The position numbers and the translations under genes are program-made. From NCBI GenBank assembly GCA_020536535.1, contig JAHLWZ010000877.1, positions 1-63,105 of the forward strand: 63,105 bases of DNA, written 5' to 3'. The notes below the pieces were generated by a model. The model ran no database searches. It saw only the letters and a program-made list of their open reading frames with translations, and was not told where the DNA came from. Source of the stretch: Pelomyxa schiedti. Taxonomy: Eukaryota; Protista; Evosea. Shown here one piece after another: positions 7,743-10,647 of the stretch (the first letter of the stretch is position 1; every line of letters begins with the position of its first letter).

Positions 7743-10647
7743 ATGAGTAGGAACGCAACACCAGGAGGTTATGGGTTTGGTAGTGGGGACACCAAGTGGC
7801 CAGTGGCCCCGTGGAAATTCTTCGAGGCGGCGAGGGACGGCAGGGTCGACGTGCTGTCCTCGATGTTACGAGGGGGCACTCATGTCGACTCCATAACCGA
7901 GGGAGAGCCCACCAAGATGGTGTGCCAACGCGTAATTATGGGCGTGGGTGGGTTTTGCAATGTGCTATAATGCATTTCACCTGTATACCCAAAACTAAAG
8001 TTTTGTAGACAGCTTTGCACTGGGCATCAAGGTTTGGACAAGTTAGTTCCGTGAAAGTGCTGTTGTCTGCGGGAGCTTCTGTGAACTTAGCTGTACACAT
8101 CCCCTTCCCCAGTCCCTCACTTTTTTTAATTAACATTTGTACAGACAGTTGTGTAGGACCTCCTTGAATATATTCAAAATTCTAACTGCCTGCCTCTCAA
8201 ATAATTTTCTCTAATTCCTTGAAGTCGGTATGGATATTGATTACACTCTATCTGGGTTTCACTCACACTTCTCCTTTTTGGATCATTTTCTGTGCTTACC
8301 CTGTAGCTTGTATGAACCCAAAACACTCTCACCGGTTTCACTTCGCACCCACAATCTTTCCCTCCTTACTCCCAACTTATTGCATTATACACTTATTCAC
8401 GGTGACAGTCAGTATGTAATCCATATGTTGAAATTTCCCACTTGGAACTCATTACTTCTTTTTTTTCCTTCATGTGCATCTGGAATTCCTTAGTCTGTGA
8501 GTTCCTCTCAAACACTAAATGTAACTGACACCCCTTTCACCTAAAACATAGTACGTATGCATCCTAAATTTGACTTGGAAAATCACACTTACCCTTTCTA
8601 TGGGAAATGTGCTCAATGTACTTTCTTTTGTCTACCATGCTTTGACTGGCACAGTCAGTGTGTACTCCCACGTTTTTCTCACAATTTCTTACCACTTTTC
8701 ACACTTATCATTTGTAATTGTGCACCCTAGAGTGTGGTATGAACTCTAATCTCCTTGTCCCGAATGACTTTTCTGTTACAGCGGGTATTGACTAGTATTT
8801 CCTTCTAAAATATTACTGATTACTTTTGCTCCTCTCTTTACACTCGTAAAGAAGGTATAATTTCCAACATTAAACTTCATTTACTCTTACATTTCATCCC
8901 TTAAGGGAGATGTGTGTTTCCAATTTTTTGTTTTAAAAAATAGACATTACATAGACTGCTTTACATTTCGCATGTCGGGAAAATCATCCCGCAGTGGTAG
9001 AACTACTGCTACAGTATCGAGCGGACACAAACATCAAAGTTATCTTCCAATCGATGTTTAAAAGTAACCTTCAACAAGAACGATGATGGCAAGACTCCTG
9101 TTGACCTTGCTAAGATTGATGCTTTAAGACAACTATTCCGACAGGTTGCAAGCCGCACAGGAACTACATCTCACTGACCTTAACAATAAGATGAACATAT
9201 TACCCACCAGCTCTAACTCTTCTCAAATGCAACAACCCTCTGTCAGCGCCCTAAAAATTCTTTCTTTGTTGATGACTGAATTTGGCCCATACATTACTGC
9301 ATCAAAGGGGGCATTGCCTTCAAATGCTGCTGTAATACCACCGTGCGATGCAGAAGGTGAGCTTGCCTCTTTGGTTCAATCGATAAAATTTGGCATTGAC
9401 CAGGTAAAGGAAATTGAGATCATTGTTACAACGTAAATACCCCACACAGGAAAGGGAAAGGAAACTCCGTGAATTAGAGTGTACACTCACCAAGAAAATC
9501 ATGCAAGAGCAGGAGGTCTCAAGGCAAGCCACTGAAGAAAAAATCCGTGCAACAGAAGATCTATGGAAATCTCGAAAGGAATCCGAGGAACTTGAACAAA
9601 AGGTGCATAAACTTGAGCACACAAACCATCAACTTGAAAAAGAACTCCAAAAACTTCACCAAGAATACGAAGCAGAGGTGAAGGTTCATGAGCCACAAAT
9701 TGTTCTCAATACCGTGAAGAATCCCAAAGAGGTTCAGAGCATGACTACAATTGGAACTGGACTAGCTTCTTCTGAGCTCGCTTCAATGCACAAAATTGGC
9801 ACAGAATTTACATCACAAATAGAAACAACCGCAGAGGAAGTGGTAAAATTTGAAGAATTCCTGCACCGCATGACACAGGGCCTCAAGGGAGCCAGGGAAA
9901 GAGCCCGAACAATTGAGGCACATCTTCAGAATCTAACACAACTGAAAGAGACCCTGTGCATTGAGCGTGACAACCTCGAGAAACAATGTGGCCAGCACCT
10001 CGGAAAATTCCTCACAACACAGAGCTCCATGCAGGAGATCCGTCAAACACTAAGCGAAATGGCAATCTTGCTTGGAAAGGTGGCAAGCACTATCCCCCAT
10101 GATGTTGGCGGAGGTGAAACCACAACTGCAACGGCCCCTTCCAAAGGTAAACTAAAACCTTTCTTCCCCATTAGTGCCTGAAACACTAACACTCCAAACA
10201 AAACAAAACAAAACAAACTAAACAAAAAAAAAAGATGGTTCCAACTTGCTTGGTGCGGAACTCCCGCGGATAGAAAATTTCGACTGTCCCCCGGCACCCC
10301 AGGTGTCATTGACTGCACTTGGAAACATTCTCCTCCAGCTCAAGAAATACAGCCTCGCGGAATGCACAAACTTGATTCAGCAAGGTGTTGCCATTTCCCG
10401 GGACCTCGTGGAACAGTTCGGACAACTGGAGGCCCTACAAAAACGGGTGGAAGGCCTGCGCTCTGAGTGCAAAGAAATCAACCGGATGTATGAGGACAAC
10501 TACATGCTGTCACGAGCACTAGAGGGTGACACCAACTTCCTCTCGTGCCCCAATATTCACCAGCAGGCATTCGAGATGCTCACAACCGCACTCCAAAATA
10601 CAGGCGGTCTTATGCGCAGTGTTTCCGGCAGAACATCGGGTCACTAA
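7743..10647 (+). CDS. Ankyrin-repeat (about 3-4 repeats) plus long coiled-coil protein containing a micro-exon array
   Basis: Exon peptides FFEAARDGRVDVLSSMLRGG, TALHWASRFGQVSSVKVLLSAGASVNLA (8009-8092), TALHFACRENHPAVVELLLQYRADTNIK (from 8955), NDDGKTPVDLA; then E/K/Q-rich heptad region (about 9450-10100) and a last exon ending at 10647; joined via GT-AG introns. Confidence 0.85.
8145..8911 (+). other. Array of 11 phase-0 micro-exons: 8145-8150 ACAGTT (TV), 8225-8227 TCG (S), 8307-8309 CTT (L), 8409-8411 TCA (S), 8494-8496 TCT (S), 8552-8554 TAC (Y), 8655-8657 TCA (S), 8731-8736 AGTGTG (SV), 8782-8784 CGG (R), 8852-8854 AAG (K), 8906-8911 GGAGAT (GD)
   Basis: Each unit is AG + 3 or 6 nt + GT, preceded by a pyrimidine-rich tract; intervening introns are 43-100 nt and nearly free of other AG; the last unit supplies the ankyrin-consensus G-x before TALH. 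Confidence 0.85.

Follow-up and report, generated by a model that had tools for sequence, protein, structure and literature searches.

The gene and its predicted micro-exon array

The window analysed is a 63,105-nt contig (JAHLWZ010000877.1) of the anaerobic amoeba Pelomyxa schiedti, and the subject of this report is a gene on its + strand at 7743-10647 with a model length of about 591 codons. The predicted protein comprises, in order, an N-terminal capping unit, two ankyrin repeats, a C-terminal cap, a coiled coil and a C-terminal region. The exons of the two ankyrin repeats are separated by 862 nt (8093-8954), which probably consist of 12 spliceosomal introns and 11 micro-exons, with all or nearly all of the micro-exons included in genomic order. 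Table 1 lists the features. The genome searched was the P. schiedti assembly of 52,367,397 bases in 5337 contigs, published as 52.4 Mb in 5337 scaffolds with 7.43 introns per gene (PMC8887013). Each exon was searched separately, and the loop encoded by the array was placed in the ankyrin fold using Pfam profile coordinates.

A first-pass annotation, made from the letters of the window alone, had parsed the region into 11 units of acceptor, micro-exon and donor. All of the coordinates, triplets, donors and acceptors that it listed are present, and the 12 intron lengths (52, 74, 79, 99, 82, 55, 100, 73, 45, 67, 51 and 43 nt; all GT-AG) agree exactly. Eight units of 3 nt and three of 6 nt make up 42 nt encoding TV-S-L-S-S-Y-S-SV-R-K-GD; all are in phase 0 with lengths that are multiples of 3, and every subset is in frame. 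In-frame internal GT dinucleotides occur, as it had pointed out, in the 6-nt units at 8145 and 8731. Its statements that the region has no useful open reading frame and is far longer than the other introns were borne out: a search of the array region for open reading frames gave nothing meaningful, and the 862 nt compare with 40-89 nt for the five ordinary introns of the gene (89, 40, 46, 46 and 88 nt). The individual segments of the array, at 43-100 nt, are similar in length to these ordinary introns. The donors of 8 of the 11 units are GTRTG or GTGAG, whereas the ordinary donors of the gene are GTTATC, GTTGCA, GTAAAG and GTAAAC.

The region 8093-8954 contains 23 AG dinucleotides, 12 of which are followed by GT exactly 3 nt later. 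These 12 occurrences of AGNNNGT compare with 1.27 ± 1.07 (maximum 6) in 5000 dinucleotide shuffles. A chain detector (NAG, 3 or 6 nt, GT-R-N-D; 30-130 nt between units) gave a chain of 11 in the array; none of 2000 shuffles had a chain of more than 3, and chains elsewhere on the 63-kb contig reach 3 units at most on both strands. Shuffled sequence is therefore far less dense in such clusters, which is the comparison that the first-pass annotation had proposed. Its description of the introns as pyrimidine-rich and AG-poor also stands, with a pyrimidine content of 53-69% and 3 interior AG dinucleotides where 14.9 were expected (P = 2e-4). Searches of the array region for tandem repeats and against Rfam returned no repeat and no family, respectively. 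Mutual similarity among the 12 array introns was not significant (best z = 3.6 among 66 pairs), and a genome donor consensus derived from hexamer counts was uninformative because coding sequence dominates the counts.

Joining 8092 directly to 8955 would drop five positions of the ankyrin profile (32, 33, 1, 2 and 3), which form the tip of the hairpin and contain a conserved Gly. The same five are encoded without interruption, as NDDGK before TPVD, at the following repeat boundary of the gene. The K-G-D that precedes TALH at the end of the array fits ankyrin consensus positions 1-3. In Pfam coordinates, 5 of the 14 loop residues complete a canonical 33-residue repeat, and the other 9 are extra. 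Since a direct join leaves the repeat five residues short, the profile alignment supports the view that the loop would be needed structurally.

In the NCBI annotation, this one gene is split into three wrong models. Pelo_13292 (90 amino acids) contains exons 1-2 and then ends in 'TVV*' by reading through the donor of micro-exon 1 after the first mini-intron, Pelo_13293 (201 amino acids) begins with spurious exons from within the array, and a third model (272 amino acids) covers the C-terminal part. Pelo_5102, the model of the paralogue on contig C417 described below, is also truncated at the array. The earlier expectation that standard prediction would miss such an architecture is thus matched by published models broken in three at the locus. 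As the annotation fragments such genes, the ankyrin proteins of P. schiedti are systematically mis-modelled.

The search for sequencing runs gave three DNA runs, from which the assembly was probably made, and one RNA run (single-cell, 3'-biased). Contigs of the RNA run lie on 9256-10524 only, with 9404-9449 and 10147-10234 missing from them, which shows that transcripts of the gene's 3' part are made and spliced.

Three further observations concern the array sequence itself. At 8407-8418 and 8653-8664, the form cag-TCAG-T(A/G)TGT creates two overlapping 3-nt exons 4 nt apart, and the resulting choices, TCA/TAT and TCA/TGT, keep the frame either way. At 8850-8860 (aaagAAGgtataa), the AG at 8853-8854 abuts a GT donor, a weak zero-length, ratchet-point-like alternative to micro-exon 10 (8853-8856). 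The one variant seen within the array is an A>T at 8418 (donor position +7 in the intron that follows micro-exon 4), in a low-depth contig of DNA run X4.

Table 1. Features of the ankyrin and coiled-coil gene at 7743-10647. Acceptor and donor letters of the micro-exons are in lower case, separated from the exon by slashes.
Feature	Position	Strand	Description	Evidence or remark
Exon 1	7743..7919	+	59 amino acids; start codon and N-terminal capping helices of ankyrin domain	Open frame from ATG to GT donor; in annotated Pelo_13292
Ankyrin repeat 1 exon	8009..8092	+	28 amino acids, 84 nt; ...GASVNLA, ends Asn+2	Pfam Ank E = 1.5e-7, positions 4-30/33
Array	8093..8954	+	862 nt: predicted 12 GT-AG introns of 43-100 nt and 11 micro-exons (42 coding nt, 14 codons)	
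Micro-exon 1	8145..8150	+	cag/ACAGTT/gtgtag, Thr-Val	3 nt possible via internal GT; acceptor used by Pelo_13292
Micro-exon 2	8225..8227	+	aag/TCG/gtatgg, Ser	
Micro-exon 3	8307..8309	+	tag/CTT/gtatga, Leu	
Micro-exon 4	8409..8411	+	cag/TCA/gtatgt, Ser	Overlapping alternative TAT 8413-8415
Micro-exon 5	8494..8496	+	tag/TCT/gtgagt, Ser	
Micro-exon 6	8552..8554	+	tag/TAC/gtatgc, Tyr	
Micro-exon 7	8655..8657	+	cag/TCA/gtgtgt, Ser	Overlapping alternative TGT 8659-8661
Micro-exon 8	8731..8736	+	tag/AGTGTG/gtatga, Ser-Val	3 nt possible via internal GT
Micro-exon 9	8782..8784	+	cag/CGG/gtattg, Arg	
Micro-exon 10	8852..8854	+	aag/AAG/gtataa, Lys	Ankyrin consensus position 1
Micro-exon 11	8906..8911	+	aag/GGAGAT/gtgtgt, Gly-Asp	Ankyrin consensus positions 2-3; conserved terminal unit; 43-nt intron after
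Ankyrin repeat 2 exon	8955..9038	+	28 amino acids, starts TALHFA	Pfam Ank E = 1.2e-8, positions 4-31/33
C-terminal capping ankyrin exon	9079..9144	+	22 amino acids; hairpin NDDGK contiguous	Frame and splice sites; in Pelo_13293
Linker exon	9191..9403	+	71 amino acids; unique in genome	RNA contig over 9256-9400
46-nt intron	9404..9449	+	Spliced out in RNA	Junction in RNA contig, run X1
Coiled-coil exon	9450..10146	+	232 amino acids and 1 nt	RNA contigs over it; family of at least 79 genomic matches
88-nt intron, phase 1	10147..10234	+	Missing from RNA contig	Record 2 joins 10146 to 10237, 2 letters between
Last exon	10235..10644 and stop TAA 10645..10647	+	137 codons including split codon	Matches C-terminus of annotated protein P0001

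Related arrays in the genome

Only two other sequences in the 52-Mb genome, one on contig C417 and one on C163, are related to exon 1, and both belong to array-bearing genes; these two arrays were also recovered independently by a splice-pattern search. The three genes share one plan, consisting of exon 1, an 84-nt exon of ankyrin repeat 1 (ANK1) that ends Asn+2, the array, an exon of ankyrin repeat 2 (ANK2) that starts with T-x-L-H and ends with IK, and a cap exon. Among the three genes, ANK1 identity is 12-17/28. The C417 array has 8 units, reading A-T-W-A-G-L-G-GD, and the C163 array has 12 units, reading C-D-S-L-P-I-T-F-I-F-T-GD. All three arrays close with a 6-nt Gly-Asp unit, which is GGAGAT twice and GGAGAC once. 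Otherwise, they have no alignable sequence except for the splice motifs and, between the window and C417, the 14 nt AGGGAGATGTGTGT (Gly-Asp unit and donor), which are identical in the C417 paralogue. A search of the genome for DNA-level paralogues of 7743-9145 returned none. When a strong donor was required, the spacing from acceptor to donor in the three arrays was 3 nt in 23 cases, 6 nt in 4 and 1 nt in 1; the single 1-nt spacing is an overlapping alternative, and no other spacing from 0 to 12 occurred, never 0.

The first-pass annotation had proposed a real, selected splicing architecture. In addition to the non-random pattern described above, two anciently diverged paralogues keep arrays at an equal intron position while the interiors are unalignable, meaning that splice signals, frame and terminal unit have outlasted a divergence that erased the intron interiors. 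These comparisons support an architecture that is non-random and kept by selection.

The C417 paralogue (L039, C417:44500-48500, minus strand) is the closest relative of the ankyrin module and continues into a protein kinase (HRD...DFG). The ankyrin module is therefore combined with different C-terminal parts, the array-bearing module having been shuffled between kinase and coiled-coil genes. The C163 gene (L042) has a stop-bearing unit upstream of the true array that is probably a false unit.

A genome scan for clusters of AG-NNN-GT, suggested in the first-pass annotation, was performed using the strict pattern YAG-NNN-GTRTG, with a spacing of 35-95 nt and three units in a row. It gave 200 occurrences in the genome, compared with 4 in a reversed control. 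In 15 arrays with 210 units, the donors are GTGTGT in 117 units and GTATGT in 41 (158/210), the acceptors are TAG, CAG and AAG, and the introns have a median length of 91 nt. Fourteen arrays, one of them in the window and the rest at 12 of the 15 other loci surveyed, share one kind of ending: GGNGAY as the last unit, an intron of 43-88 nt and then a T-x-L-H exon. A few units of other arrays carry a stop codon, for instance CAG-TGA-GTGTGT on C219 (L041), and these either would need to be skipped or are dead. At L035 (C328:1-6000), two arrays about 2.5 kb apart have identical Gly-Asp units and nearly identical ANK2 exons, which reflects either two array-bearing repeats within a single gene or a gene recently duplicated in tandem.

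In four young tandem arrays, the copies of the cassette (about 100 nt) are near-identical. The variation between them, measured as entropy, is greatest at the first two positions of the codon, and AG, GT and most of the intron are invariant. Such codon-peaked variation is the pattern that would be expected if the codon is the selected payload. An nhmmer profile built from 69 cassettes of the young type found no match in the array of the window.

The array of the window fits this P. schiedti class of ankyrin arrays in its location, as it lies between an exon ending Asn+2 and a T-x-L-H exon, in place of ankyrin profile positions 32-33 and 1-3, and in its parts, which are units of 3 or 6 nt, NAG acceptors, donors of the GTRTG type (with weaker variants in 3 of 11) and introns of about 45-130 nt. 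It has the repeat position, the terminal Gly-Asp, the unit sizes and the splice motifs in common with the arrays of ankyrin-kinase genes (C219, C418, C687, C689, C706 and others). However, the latter consist of young tandem cassettes of about 100 nt, are rich in Gly, Asp and Tyr and lie in kinase genes, whereas the array of the window has unrelated introns, is Ser-rich and lies in a coiled-coil gene.

Proposed splicing of the array and alternatives

In the proposed mechanism, the units would be spliced in genomic order and would insert 14 residues between ankyrin repeats 1 and 2, the nine extra residues lengthening the beta-hairpin finger on the usual binding face of the ankyrin fold. The spliceosome would probably recognise the introns of 43-100 nt by intron definition and remove them in sequence, much as recursive splicing does but with one codon left at each step; definition of the introns one by one is probable because a 3-nt exon has no room for the 3' splice-site factors and U1 together. 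The variable triplet would occupy donor positions -3 to -1, with the intronic part of the donor compensating, and this placement may account for intronic donors that are unusually uniform compared with the ordinary donors of the gene. The young arrays elsewhere in the genome suggest that the array grew by tandem duplication of 'intron + codon' cassettes followed by divergence. As its introns have lost their resemblance to each other, the array would be old.

Several results weigh against ordered inclusion. The RNA contigs cover none of 7743-9255, and zero array junctions were seen; as the sole RNA run covers 9256-10524 and not the array, we infer the inclusion of the micro-exons in mRNA, and likewise the splicing order and the function of the loop. 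Profile and word-index searches of protein collections gave no transcript-derived protein for the 5' half of the gene: the coiled-coil exon as query of an exhaustive profile search, and Pelo_13293 and an alignment of the three exon 1 sequences as queries of word-index searches, brought up NCBI models only (Pelo_13292, Pelo_13293, the C-terminal fragment and, for the C417 paralogue, Pelo_5102). Stop codons in the micro-exons of the 15 arrays number 2 vs 5.5 expected, which is not significant (P = 0.09). In the middle of the array, the triplets encode Ser or Leu (TCN, CTT) and have a pyrimidine-rich composition like that of introns, whereas other arrays are rich in Gly, Asp and Tyr, and three of the 11 donors (GTGTAG, GTATTG and GTATAA) are weaker than the class consensus.

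RNA contigs confined to 9256-10524, the intron-like triplets and the stop-codon test would suit one long intron of 862 nt, removed in one step or stepwise so that 8092 is joined to 8955, with the units acting as splicing aids or remaining as relics. This is improbable. The ankyrin repeat would lose the five consensus positions including Gly, and an acceptor followed by a donor 3 nt on necessarily leaves a triplet behind in the RNA; the spacing is 3 or 6 nt in the array but zero at true recursive sites. Moreover, the terminal Gly-Asp is conserved in the paralogues and closes 14 arrays at 13 loci, no part of the cassette varies as much as the codon in young arrays, and an intron of 862 nt would be about 10 times as long as the others in the gene. 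The three weak donors, introns without any remaining mutual similarity and the lack of the RING finger found in many coiled-coil relatives could also point to a pseudogene or to an array, decaying or dead, that its gene has ceased to need; this is very improbable, since all 11 units retain AG, frame and GT, the flanking exons are all open, the 3' part is transcribed and spliced, and two paralogues retain the plan. That AG and GT cluster by chance in this pyrimidine-rich sequence, for which only the low G content speaks, has a negligible probability and is refuted by the shuffles, none of the 5000 reaching 12 AGNNNGT and none of the 2000 giving a chain longer than 3.

A further alternative is combinatorial inclusion, in which each transcript carries a subset of the units and one gene yields many loop variants. 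The in-frame structure of all units (phase 0, multiples of 3), the two units with overlapping alternative triplets and the two 6-nt units with internal donors would permit it, alternative splicing is reported for truffle mini-exons in the passages cited below, and the few stop-codon units in other arrays would need skipping. It is nevertheless considered unlikely, as donors that are strong and conserved suggest that every unit is used efficiently, and the RNA contigs are confined to 9256-10524, with none over the array. Quite unlikely, too, is that the array is a splice-level diversification device, whose transcripts with different subsets or alternative triplets would give a repertoire of binding loops. 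If so, it would be a somatic, RNA-based analogue of the diversity of antibody complementarity-determining regions in a free-living amoeba. Pelomyxa carries prokaryotic endosymbionts, and such loops might recognise these or other microbes.

Ordered inclusion, if it takes place as predicted, would mean twelve consecutive splicing reactions in 862 nt that add 14 residues, mostly one codon each. The predicted array, if true, would test the smallest exon that the spliceosome handles and the order in which neighbouring introns are removed.

Known systems and other features of the gene

The first-pass annotation knew of no described run of eight single-codon exons in one protein loop, and this claim of novelty does not hold. 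In the passages cited, the NACHT-ANK (nank) genes of the truffle Tuber melanosporum are described as ankyrin-repeat genes with dozens of 3-bp exons that are alternatively spliced and proposed to diversify the recognition domain (Iotti et al. 2012, Fungal Biol 116:261, via PMC9815663 and PMC4986451). As in Tuber, the mini-exons lie in the ankyrin-repeat region, here with flanking exons that match Pfam Ank, and many consecutive 3-bp exons have canonical borders, here 8 of 11 of 3 nt with GT-AG and predicted from the sequence. The Tuber genes differ in encoding NACHT NTPase receptors, whereas the P. schiedti gene combines ankyrin repeats with a coiled coil, and a search for a NACHT domain gave no match in any exon of the gene. 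They also form a fungal family with no common family descent with the amoebozoan gene. The truffle system is thus a precedent for the array, which would work in a similar way yet is not a member of the truffle family. Amoebozoans and fungi belong to different eukaryotic supergroups, and the resemblance is therefore either convergent or far older than the fungal family. No description of such arrays in amoebae was found in the literature searched. As the design appears in an amoebozoan and a truffle, in ankyrin repeats in both, it suggests that evolution has arrived more than once, by one route, at a binding loop that can evolve rapidly: an 'intron + codon' cassette is duplicated and its codon then mutated.

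The array can also be compared with other splicing systems. At the ratchet points of recursive splicing (Drosophila Ubx, long vertebrate introns), AG abuts GT, nothing is left, and the introns span tens of kilobases. The array resembles them in that removal would be stepwise via internal acceptor-donor pairs, sequential definition being its likely mechanism, but differs in a spacing of 3 or 6 nt, a codon left at each step and a region of less than 1 kb. Schistosome micro-exon genes likewise have runs of symmetric, in-frame micro-exons, mostly of 6-36 nt, which make up the bulk of a small secreted protein and whose skipping can vary that protein, whereas the array has 3-nt exons and contributes 14 of about 591 codons to one loop. 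The microexons of animals and plants are, to our knowledge, single ones between normal exons and not eleven in a row. In the cited passages, animal and plant microexons of 3 nt or less are described as existing, conserved and routinely missed by annotation and aligners (PMC7821500, PMC8831610, PMC8632122). The array shares 3-nt exons missed by annotation with them and differs in its eleven consecutive units. On the protein side, LoopDARPins are engineered ankyrin binders in which an extended loop in a central repeat is the recognition element. Their elongated loop in an ankyrin repeat is like that of the array, except that it is synthetic and contiguously encoded, whereas the loop described here is predicted to be split into micro-exons.

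The coiled-coil and C-terminal region (9450-10644) has at least 79 matches in the genome, including loci L003-L016. Annotated relatives of this region have MORN repeats upstream and a RING finger downstream, and these relatives are probably E3 ligases; the gene at 7743-10647 has ankyrin repeats in the place of the MORN repeats and is without the RING finger. Beside the closest relatives of the coiled-coil exon, no arrays were found in five loci. A low-complexity tract of (AAAAC)n and poly-A at 10187-10236 fills the 3' end of the 88-nt intron, which is thus A-rich and not pyrimidine-rich at this end, yet is removed in RNA.

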